Sequence record: NC_042116.1
Direction: 5' to 3' (one strand)
DNA: 64,000 nucleotides
Shown one piece after another: positions 8,981 to 15,536 of this stretch. The notes under the pieces are model-generated. The model worked only from the letters and a program-made list of their open reading frames with translations. It was not told the DNA's origin and searched no databases. The position numbers and the translations under genes were made by a program. Numbering within the stretch: the first letter of the stretch is position 1; each line of letters opens with the position of its first letter.

Positions 8981-9637
8981 TTATAGTGACAAAGCTGGAA
9001 TAGTTTTATACACTTTAATAGCAAAGTTACCAGCAGTAGCAGCAGTAGCAGAAGAAGCTAAAATAACTTCAGTACCAGTACTGGTTAGCATTGGAACACC
9101 AGTAAGATCATCGATTAATAGACGACCTTCATCGATTGCACCAGATGGAACACCTTGGAAAGTTGTAAGATCTTTATCAAAAACATTTGCACGTTCTACC
9201 AAGAATGTGATAACATTTGCAGAAGCAACAGAAGCCGCACCAGTAACACCTGAAGGGGCATTCTTGAAGCCAGCAACCGCTACAGCAGCAGCAGTATCAG
9301 AAGTTGATAGGATGACCGCACGTTGTTGAACAATGTCAATGACACGCTTTACGTTGGTTTGAGCGGCATATGCAGCAGTATAATCAGCAGCTAGTGATAC
9401 AGCAACGAATGCAGTACCATCAACACGAGTCACACCTTTATCATTCAAAAATACAATGATAGTATCTGCATCTTCGGTGTTAAGAAAACGTTGTAGCTCA
9501 GTAAAAGATGCAACAGCACCAGTAACTTTAACAACTACGTTTGAAGCACCACCGATAGCAATAGATACTAGGGCGTTTTTACCATAGAAATAGCCAAGTA
9601 CACCAGATTCAGAAAAACCATTAATACGTTCTAACAT
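8981..9637 (-). CDS. Putative virion structural protein (paralogue of 9654..10202)
   Basis: Ala/Val/Gly-rich; shares QRAV(I/L), ITF(L/I)VER and AIKV motifs with its neighbour; AGGAGG SD; late promoter upstream. Confidence 0.55.
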   Translation of the reverse strand: MLERINGFSESGVLGYFYGKNALVSIAIGGASNVVVKVTGAVASFTELQRFLNTEDADTIIVFLNDKGVTRVDGTAFVAVSLAADYTAAYAAQTNVKRVIDIVQQRAVILSTSDTAAAVAVAGFKNAPSGVTGAASVASANVITFLVERANVFDKDLTTFQGVPSGAIDEGRLLIDDLTGVPMLTSTGTEVILASSATAATAGNFAIKVYKTIPALSL

Positions 9638-9653: not shown

Positions 9654-10202
9654 TTAGACTAGTACTGGTAGTGCAGCAAATACTTTAATTGCTACGCCAG
9701 CAGCTAGTGCAGCAGAACCATCTTTTTTCTGGAATACACCAGCTTGTGCTAGATTAGTAGCGATTTCAACAGTAGGATCAACTGTTAGTGCATAAGTAGC
9801 ACCTGGTTTATTAACTTGTTTAGTTAGAACATCTTGACGTTCAACGATGAAAGTAATACCAAATGAAGCAGCAGCAAGAGTACCAGCAGAACCGTAAGCG
9901 ATAACGTTTCCACCAACAGTTCCGAAACCGGAAGCAGTAGGGTCGATTGTATTAGAAAGTACAGAAGTAGTTACTAATACTGCACGTTGTGCTAAAGCTT
10001 GTGCTATAATAAATTGGTTTTTTTCAGCAGCAGATAGTGCAGTTTGAGCAGCATCAGTACCATCTTGTGGAACTGCGGTAACTCCAATTTCTACATCTGC
10101 TGGTAGAGTAATTACAACAGTTGCAAAACCGTTATTACCACCCCAATATTCGCGACTATGTTCTGACATGCCATAGTTACGGTCAAAAGAATTAAGACTC
10201 AT
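9654..10202 (-). CDS. Putative virion structural protein (start revised to ATG 10202)
   Basis: AGGAG SD before 10202; Ala-rich; paralogous to 8981..9637. Confidence 0.55.
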   Translation of the reverse strand: MSLNSFDRNYGMSEHSREYWGGNNGFATVVITLPADVEIGVTAVPQDGTDAAQTALSAAEKNQFIIAQALAQRAVLVTTSVLSNTIDPTASGFGTVGGNVIAYGSAGTLAAASFGITFIVERQDVLTKQVNKPGATYALTVDPTVEIATNLAQAGVFQKKDGSAALAAGVAIKVFAALPVLV

Positions 10203-10322
10203 AAAAAATCTCCTTTGTCTAATTTGGTGCAGGTACTTATTGACCTGCTTAATGTTATTTATCAAATCTTTTGCGTTGATATTAATTACGCAATAAAACT
10301 TATCAAAATTCTTATATGCAAA

Positions 10323-11382: not shown

Positions 11383-11383
<1 letters not shown>

Positions 11384-11883
11384 TGGCTATTTTAAAAATA
11401 TTAACTGACTATTCATTTATCGTAGAGACTGTATCTGGTGAAAAGATTGGAATATTGGTCAATTATGATGAAGGAACTACTGAACGTACTGGAATTGAAT
11501 TTTTTAATGCAGATGGTTCATTTAAACTTGATAGTATATCACAATTGCAGGATTTATTAGGTGAAGAATTCACTTATGCGGAAATAGAAGTAACTGATTC
11601 GACAAATACTTCAAAATCATTGGGTGATTATCCAATAAATGATACTGATACCATTACTGATATATTATATGATGATCCATTGGGTATTGGAACTTTTAAA
11701 AAGAGTTCACGTTCTAAAAAACGATTTTATCCAGGTTGGTGGTTAGTTCGTAGTGAAAATGGAACATATTTGCCTAGATTAACCATTAGTGTAGACATTT
11801 ATAATGAAAGAAATAATACCGAAGCATTATATGGTCCATTTAAAACATATATGGATGTAACTTACACATTAAAACAGTTATAA
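11383..11883 (+). CDS. Hypothetical protein
   Basis: ORF overlapping rnh stop; no motif recognised. Confidence 0.65.
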
Positions 11884-11926
11884 CGTTCATCAAGTACTAC
11901 ATTGTAGTACTTTTTAAGGAAGATGT

Positions 11927-12484
11927 ATGAATAACATGATGGAATATATAAAATGTAAAAATAGTATTTTTTATTTTATAGAAATTTATCTAAAACTAGA
12001 GCTTAGGGATTATCAAATTAAACAGATAATCAACTATATAGAAATGGAACAAGATGAAATACTGAATATTACAGGAAATAGAGGTTCAGGAGTAACATTA
12101 ATAAATTGTGTTTTCCTTTTATGGAATGTATTGTTTGGTATGAATGAAAAACATATAATGATATTAAATAAACAAGCCCTAATTTTTTATTCATTGGACA
12201 GCATATTTAAATTATATTCAATAGTAAAGTCTAATTGGCCTAATGGACAACATATAAATGAAATATCACGTAACAATAGACATATCATATCATTTAATAA
12301 TAACTGTGATATACAAGTTGGTGATTTAACTATGTTACATCAGATAAGGTCTGGATTATCGAATTATATTATATTTGATGATGTTGATATATCAAATCTA
12401 TCAATAAAAACATTAAATTTATACAATAAAAAATATATAGTAACTGATACTTATGATGATAATGATTATCTATTAGACGTATGA
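11927..12484 (+). CDS. Truncated, degenerate terminase-ATPase paralogue
   Basis: Colinear with the N-terminal third of the adjacent terminase (CKNSIFYFIE vs [10 protein letters not shown]; RDYQ vs FQYQ; GNRGSGVT vs ARQMGKT; IIFDD vs LYLDE); no nuclease domain. Confidence 0.7.
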   Translation: MNNMMEYIKCKNSIFYFIEIYLKLELRDYQIKQIINYIEMEQDEILNITGNRGSGVTLINCVFLLWNVLFGMNEKHIMILNKQALIFYSLDSIFKLYSIVKSNWPNGQHINEISRNNRHIISFNNNCDIQVGDLTMLHQIRSGLSNYIIFDDVDISNLSIKTLNLYNKKYIVTDTYDDNDYLLDV

Positions 12485-12544
12485 GTATAATTTGAACTTA
12501 AAAATGAAATATATAAAAGCTAAATAGTCTAGAAACCATATTAA

Positions 12545-15536
<2,992 letters not shown>

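Follow-up and report, generated by a model that had tools for sequence, protein, structure and literature searches.

The gene g267 of the Yersinia jumbo phage fHe-Yen9-04 (LT960551, genus Eneladusvirus, 354 kb) is annotated in LT960551 as "hypothetical protein" and is flanked by g266 and by g268, the gene for the large terminase subunit (TerL). Profile and motif comparisons indicate that g267 encodes a TerL ATPase-domain copy without catalytic activity, and we consider it reasonably likely to be the decaying version of a packaging accessory that is non-catalytic and dispensable. The gene is the fHe-Yen9-04 orthologue of one that is already known. A "truncated large terminase" or "terminase-like protein" was reported as a feature of Rak2-like phages in 2017 and in 2020, with a function proposed in neither report (PMC5259590; PMC7760394). 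As a published hallmark of Rak2-like jumbo phages, its presence is ordinary; what is added here is that the dead motifs run through the whole family, that evolutionary rates can be compared across the locus, that one relative has no such gene, and that the copy in fHe-Yen9-04 and fHe-Yen9-03 (below, Yen9-04 and Yen9-03) is truncated and has left a relic behind it. Coordinates refer to the window, the 64-kb stretch of DNA that was analysed (positions 186001-250000 of LT960551); its segment 11300-14300 has 100% identity to LT960551 and 99.9% to fHe-Yen9-03.

Homology, fold and motifs of g267

The open reading frame (ORF) of g267 aligns colinearly with TerL residues ~33-215. An initial annotation of this locus, made from the letters alone, had described a 185-codon ORF with a Shine-Dalgarno (SD) sequence, matching the first third of terL, and this description stands; the AAGGA of the SD sequence lies 8 nucleotides before the start codon. 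BLASTP against the TerL of the same phage gives 24% identity over residues 4-129 (E 4e-7). In profile comparisons, g267 matches phrog_5989, "terminase large subunit", at E 8.4e-26, a family profile made from the orthologue alignment matches g267 at E 2.5e-43, and the orthologue profile finds the ATPase domain of T4 gp17 in the PDB at E 2.7e-12. A Pfam scan of g267 gives no Terminase_6N match at E<=1, its sole match being to ResIII at 19.8 bits, under the cut-off of 22.5, and a word-based protein search returns only g267 itself and one weak match of 305 residues, nearly empty because the family is too diverged for such a search.

The g267 product is predicted to have the RecA-like ASCE (additional strand, conserved glutamate) ATPase fold of TerL. 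An AlphaFold2 model from an 11-sequence alignment (pLDDT 83.6, pTM 0.84) is confident up to residue ~150, and its best Foldseek match is the T4 gp17 ATPase domain (2o0h, E 2e-8, TMq 0.70), followed by the ATPase domain of P74-26 TerL, with the top matches spanning E 2e-8 to 1e-6. Also among the structural matches is 4znj, the R139A mutant structure.

The active-site motifs of this fold are altered in g267. Walker A, ARQMGKTT in TerL, has Val56 in place of its Lys, and Walker B, LLYLDE in TerL, reads YIIFD151-D152, with Asp in place of the catalytic Glu. Both replacements had been pointed out in the initial annotation, and its call of an inactive terminase-ATPase copy agrees with the picture of dead Walker motifs in a homologue of the TerL ATPase domain. 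It was also right that the nuclease region is absent, since the ORF ends at residue 185 and so lacks the C-terminal RNaseH-like nuclease domain. Motif III, which had been called absent, is present at its expected position (V172-T-D-T175 against I-S-S-T in TerL), and the ORF stops just past it. In the alignment with TerL, Gln30 (the Q motif), Arg52, Gly55, Arg141 and Asp151 are invariant among paralogues and TerLs. Arg141, 10 residues N-terminal of the Walker B Asp, is the putative counterpart of the trans-acting arginine finger R139 of P74-26 TerL. The greater AT-richness of g267 is borne out as well (GC 22.8%, against 33.5% in terL).

The Rak2-like family and the truncation of its Yen9-04 member

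Syntenic orthologues of 229-236 residues occur in phages BF (BF_0272), CBB (CBB_274), GAP32 (GAP32_268), Kaldavass and XbC2 and in five pEa_SNUABM phages (for example pEaSNUABM50_00268, in the phage called pEa50 below), the four given here by locus tag belonging to phrog_5989, and in these named phages the stop codon abuts or overlaps the start of terL. Gene order around the paralogue agrees between the named relatives (six genomes compared) and six metagenomic ones. Seven further relatives, all metagenomic, were retrieved through homologues of g266 used as anchors. Six of them (L117, L118, L119, L120, L122 and L124) have an open intervening ORF of 210-279 residues, and the family profile matches four of these six at E 1e-76 to 4e-10, with increasing divergence. 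The seventh, L123, has no paralogue: g266 is followed by a 131-nucleotide spacer and then by terL. Where the paralogue would be (L123:3505-3645), this relative has a strong hairpin rich in GC (AAGGATGCCCCGGCATCCTT) and, ahead of terL, a TATAAATA that resembles a T4 late promoter. Two ORFs were set aside as sure orthologues and are regarded as possible ones only, their position and motifs being similar: RaK2_00110, with hhalign at E 0.05 and no hmmsearch match, and the ORF of L120, with no hmmsearch match.

The loss of catalytic residues is a family trait. None of the 15 syntenic ORFs, 13 of which the family profile confirms as orthologues, has the Walker A Lys; V, I, L, M, S or T stands in its place. 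In the closer orthologues, where the alignment is confident, the position of the catalytic Glu is taken by D, S or N. Since the motifs are dead in every orthologue examined, the family would appear to have been catalytically dead from its origin. The Arg before the Walker B Asp is kept by most members. Full-length members align over the entire ATPase domain of TerL (positions 4-227 of the 235 in the profile), and their C-terminal block, YPWY..LT..W...LNSLG..F..YGCTRG, corresponds to VTW..P.RD..W.....LG...F..EY.C.F of TerL. A tree separates the Rak2-like paralogues from all TerLs, and from the other ATPase-only copies treated below, by a long branch (1.83, support 96/99); with its long-branch and composition warnings, it cannot tell an ancient duplication within the lineage from foreign acquisition.

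The paralogue evolves much faster than its neighbors. Between Yen9-04 and BF it has 46% amino-acid identity and a nonsynonymous rate (dN) of 0.44, while rnh, g266 and terL have 90-95% identity and dN 0.04-0.05 (for TerL, 93% identity and a ratio of nonsynonymous to synonymous rates, dN/dS, of 0.046); synonymous differences (dS) are saturated for this pair. A less saturated set, made up of Kaldavass, XbC2, L022 and L025 (dS 0.45-0.67), gives dN/dS of 0.16-0.28 for the paralogue, 0.03-0.06 for terL and 0.03-0.10 for g266. These values for the paralogue point to purifying selection on the full-length gene that is weak but real, three to five times weaker than on its neighbors. In a sliding window over the four close orthologues dN/dS is mostly 0.04-0.28 and reaches a maximum of 0.67, so that no window in that scan has the dN/dS >1 expected of diversifying selection. 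The most constrained parts in the same four are the N-terminal 30 residues and residues 166-225 (dN 0.03-0.08). Orthologue frames remain open across saturated divergence.

The Yen9-04/03 copy departs from this pattern. Aligned as DNA with BF and pEa50, g267 has deletions of about 30, 12 and 8 nucleotides and a few smaller ones toward its 3' end, and these, together with a frame break, have removed the conserved C-terminal ~50 residues. A counterpart of the lost end persists downstream as a relic in frame mod3=1 (the ORF is in mod3=2), with several stops in between; the relic overlaps the ribosome-binding region of terL, and that overlap is probably why it has been preserved. An 84-nucleotide spacer now separates g267 from terL, which has its own SD sequence. 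The initial description of the ORF as uninterrupted is accurate in that 185 codons are open, but compared with every orthologue the gene is cut short.

The surviving part has also changed far more than expected from its neighbors. At 54 aligned columns invariant in six outgroup orthologues, Yen9-04 differs in 28 and BF in 17; the comparable figures for TerL are 45 of 488 and 47 of 488. Maximum-likelihood terminal branches for the paralogue are 1.43 for Yen9-04 and 0.21 for BF, a ratio of about seven, while those for the TerLs of the two phages are 0.03 and 0.017. The drift extends to composition. GC at third codon positions is 0.17 in both g267 and terL, and the extra AT of g267 falls at positions 1 and 2, with GC at second positions of 0.20 in g267, 0.30 in the BF paralogue and 0.37 in TerL. 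Residues of the FYMINK class make up 48% of g267, 39% of the BF paralogue and 30% of TerL, and those of the GARP class 8% of g267. Such a composition is what mutation pressure leaves on a protein under weak constraint.

At the same time the frame is open against strong odds. The probability of 185 open codons at the composition of g267 is ~2e-9, the other plus-strand frames hold 27 and 29 stops, and 100 random AT-biased neutral hits keep the frame open in 0.6% of cases. With 216 of 555 nucleotides different from the BF paralogue, an open frame means that selection must have kept it open for most of that time. A near-identical phage in a 2023 wastewater metagenome shows ten differences over 2.8 kb, and both g267 and the spacer between it and terL are free of them. 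The initial annotation had held that this is not a simple pseudogene and had named dN/dS and presence across relatives as the check. At the level of the family that view is upheld by open frames and purifying selection, with one relative lacking the gene; the Yen9-04 copy itself seems to be eroding.

Possible roles of the paralogue

The account that we favor, of an eroding packaging accessory, runs as follows. The family would be a stand-alone TerL ATPase domain unable to hydrolyze ATP that has kept the fold, the Q-motif Gln and the Arg, Gly and Thr of Walker A. In relatives its translation is probably coupled to that of terL, as the abutting or overlapping ends found in most of them suggest. 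It would work through contact with TerL and not through catalysis, as a pseudo-subunit or as a regulator, and the Arg retained in most members, the putative trans arginine finger, would suit Arg141 to the part of a trans arginine-finger donor. In the Yen9-03/04 lineage the deletions and the frame break would then have cut away what in TerL is the end of the ATPase domain and broken the link between the gene and terL, after which the remaining 185 codons evolved much faster and drifted toward AT-rich codons. Truncation and fast drift together suggest that the Yen9-04 copy is a partly disabled remnant heading for loss, a point that L123 would already have reached, its frame still open and its product still predicted to fold. 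That the accessory is non-enzymatic and dispensable is suggested by weak purifying selection combined with adjacency to terL. The Yen9-03/04 allele and L123 serve as natural experiments showing that phages can do without the protein, or at any rate without the end of it that is most conserved, and this argues against an essential motor subunit. The value of the case lies at the family level, in a dead copy of the motor ATPase that has been kept beside terL for very long under weak constraint, in phages with no recognised small terminase.

Several points weigh against this account. Contact with TerL is a step that we purely infer, and the putative arginine finger is not universal, being replaced in L117 and in RaK2_00110. 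The truncated g267 still models confidently, and it ends where gp17.2 of phage phiM12, a natural 196-residue TerL fragment, also ends, so that the short form could be fully functional and not decaying. Saturation of dS between Yen9-04 and BF makes the branch-specific dN/dS of ~0.5 a rough figure, and fast evolution is equally expected of a gene in an arms race.

The paralogue may have a regulatory or dominant-negative role on the motor, as put forward in the initial annotation. In a more specific form, which we hold doubtful, the Rak2-like clade uses its dead TerL ATPase paralogue as a dedicated non-catalytic partner of the motor in the small-terminase slot, acting on TerL (for example by donating an arginine finger or by gating assembly), and the Yen9-04 copy is a natural C-terminal deletion mutant. 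If true, this would be a pseudo-enzyme subunit of a kind undescribed for any viral terminase.

That the short form is itself a fully functional regulator seems unlikely to us. In such a scheme the working unit is the ATPase core as far as motif III, which joins TerL assemblies or caps them and modulates their ATPase or nuclease, either as a dominant negative or as an arginine-finger donor, and loss of the C-terminus is adaptive remodelling. The improbably open frame would be explained, as would the confident fold up to residue ~150, the retention of Arg141, Gln30, Arg52 and Asp151, the stability of the allele in an independent wastewater metagenome, and the stop of phiM12 gp17.2 at an equal structural point. 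However, the lost block is, in relatives, one of the two segments under the strongest constraint, 52% of the family-invariant positions have changed, the Yen9-04 branch is seven times that of BF with strong composition drift at codon positions 1 and 2, and gp17.2, whose Walker motifs are intact, is a poor analogue.

The position of the gene raises the question of the small terminase (TerS). A family that took over the TerS role, DNA recognition and TerL activation, in Rak2-like phages without a recognisable gp16 would be expected directly upstream of terL, the canonical TerS slot, where the paralogue lies and where it overlaps terL in relatives; its size is TerS-like and its divergence is fast, and no small terminase is named in the CBB paper. 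No gene of the genome matches the T4 gp16 family (PF11053), although TerS proteins are so divergent that the lack of a gp16 match proves little. The neighboring gene g266 offers no TerS-like fold either, being beta-rich. Even so, we judge the substitution quite unlikely: the predicted fold of g267 is RecA-like and not the helical, ring-forming architecture of TerS, its predicted isoelectric point is neutral and it has no DNA-binding motif, L123 keeps terL without a paralogue, and phiM12 carries gp16, the truncated TerL gp17.2 and gp17 together.

As a small terminase in its own right, g266 was also considered, and it is not TerS-like. Its AlphaFold2 model (pLDDT 83.6) is a two-part, beta-rich fold with no convincing PDB match (no Foldseek match at E<=0.001, best VIA Z 4.9); no Pfam or NCBIfam match and no similarity to phiM12 gp16 were found for it, its Atlas neighbours are all unnamed, and so are its 61 homologues. 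Its dN/dS is about 0.05. The gene is strongly conserved in all Rak2-like phages, with 52% identity even to Klebsiella RaK2-type phages, and always has the gene for the T4-type RNase H on one side and those of the terminase on the other.

The initial annotation had raised the possibility of an immune decoy or titrator: a dead ATPase domain that mimics TerL would soak up the terminase-sensing Avs1-3 receptors without triggering them and so protect the phage. The idea is in keeping with the TerL ATPase fold of the model, with evolution some ten times faster than that of the neighbors, as is common for genes of host interaction, and with dispensability in one relative, as for accessory counter-defence genes; KpAvs2 is, moreover, predicted to contact the TerL ATPase domain (PMC11564622). 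Avs receptors, however, are activated by binding their targets, and Ksap2 of phage Bas60, a small protein with weak structural similarity to the TerL ATPase domain, activates KpAvs2 (PMC11564622). A mimic that binds Avs is therefore more likely to be a trigger, and a liability, than a shield. The Avs3-terminase entry 8dgc is among the structural matches of the g267 model. Avs3 reportedly recognises, in addition, the nuclease domain and the active site, which in g267 are missing or altered. With no window of dN/dS >1 and a pattern of relaxed purifying selection instead, with L123 lacking the gene, and with a Yen9-04 copy that appears to be eroding, the decoy is left unsupported and is in our view very unlikely. 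A limited search of the literature on Avs and terminases found no terminase-like decoy described.

Least credible is a leader ORF whose frame is open merely to bring ribosomes to an overlapping terL start, with a protein of no function: the overlapping or abutting stop in most relatives and the weak amino-acid constraint would fit, but the dN/dS of the unsaturated pairs and the conserved blocks at both termini indicate constraint on the protein itself, the Yen9-04 frame is open although its coupling to terL has been lost, and the terL of L123 has no leader at all.

The locus and its comparison with known systems

Features of the g267 locus, in window coordinates
Feature	Position	Strand	Description
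g266	11383..11883	+	166 aa, conserved upstream gene; synteny anchor; phrog_15898 E 4e-87
Hairpin with U-run	11893..11916	+	between g266 and g267; stem 8-9 bp, loop 3 nt
Shine-Dalgarno of g267 (AAGGAA)	11914..11919	+	ribosome-binding site annotation in LT960551; conserved in BF
g267	11927..12484	+	185 aa; TerL ATPase-domain paralogue, C-terminally truncated, predicted to be catalytically dead
Degenerate Walker A (T49 G N R G S G V T57)	12071..12097	+	from alignment with orthologues and TerL
Degenerate Walker B (Y147 I I F D151 D152)	12365..12382	+	from alignment with TerL
Motif III position (V172 T D T175)	12440..12451	+	aligned to TerL I-S-S-T; last conserved element before the premature end
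Out-of-frame C-terminal relic	12517..12570	+	counterpart is ELNSLGKPAFNLMYGCTRGLEDGK in BF; now the translation-initiation region of terL
terL (g268)	12569..14209	+	intact large terminase, 546 aa; Walker A ARQMGKTT, Walker B LYLDE, nuclease domain

The hairpin ahead of g267 (fold energy -9.9 kcal/mol, z -2.35) is also found in BF and pEa50, with paired changes in its stem (ACTACA/TGTAGT against ACTGCA/TGCAGT), and is probably a terminator or an RNA-stability element; with its AT-rich stem it escaped a simple terminator scan. The hairpin takes up the space that a promoter ahead of g267 would need. Promoter and terminator consensus scans and a search for TATAAATA gave nothing useful near g267, and in a search of sequencing runs none of the RNA runs contained the g267 locus.

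The terL product matches Terminase_6N (E 4e-15), Terminase_6C (E 1e-5) and phrog_36964 (E 8.5e-263). The terL genes of L119, L122, L124 and RaK2 itself (L008) run from 818 to >877 codons and have LAGLIDADG homing-endonuclease (intein) insertions; that of fHe-Yen9-04 has no LAGLIDADG or intein insertion. In two environmental T4-like TerLs (L029/L030 and L033/L034) intein-like sequence interrupts the protein right after Walker A or Walker B. Elsewhere in the window, two adjacent ORFs of 203-218 residues rich in Ala, Thr and Val (8981-9637 and 9654-10265, both on the minus strand) are structural proteins by the annotation of BF and CBB and resemble tandem paralogues.

ATPase-only terminase copies occur in other T4-like lineages too. 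An environmental T4-like phage (L114:998-1786) has, directly upstream of a complete terL, a 263-residue ATPase-only ORF with intact Walker A and B and the catalytic Glu, the only second TerL-like ORF in 80 environmental T4-like terL loci; genes upstream of terL in ten such loci gave no informative Pfam matches. A second such copy, gp17.2 of the Sinorhizobium phage phiM12 (SmphiM12_113, L035:3468-4058), lies directly upstream of gp17. With motifs intact in both, it would appear that a second, possibly active, ATPase-only copy of the terminase arose in these lineages. Like g267, gp17.2 ends just after motif III and belongs to the same PHROG. Unlike g267, it has an intact Walker A (GKTT) and Walker B Glu (IDE), has an annotated gp16 alongside, and falls on the TerL side of the long branch, with the Rak2-like paralogues on the other.

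Ksap2 resembles g267 in being a small, TerL-ATPase-like phage protein, and it interacts functionally with an Avs receptor; it is a trigger of Avs2 and not a decoy, and sequence kinship between the two is not expected. The ATPase domains of T4 gp17 and P74-26 TerL (2o0h, 3cpe, 4znk) have their fold in common with that predicted for g267, and with it the Q motif, the Arg, Gly and Thr of Walker A, the Arg that precedes Walker B and the Asp within it, and the position of motif III. Unlike them, g267 is without the Walker A Lys, the catalytic Glu, the segment at the end of the ATPase domain (the lid) and the nuclease domain, and unlike proteins of the T4 gp17 type it falls below the Pfam Terminase_6N threshold. 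Closest of all are the Rak2-like orthologues. The Yen9-04/03 protein has 185 residues against their 229-236 and, unlike them, neither the block YPWY..LNSLG..YGCTRG nor the overlap with terL, but it has in common with them the position between a g266-like gene and terL, homology to the TerL ATPase domain, the N-terminal block, and Walker A and B motifs that are dead.

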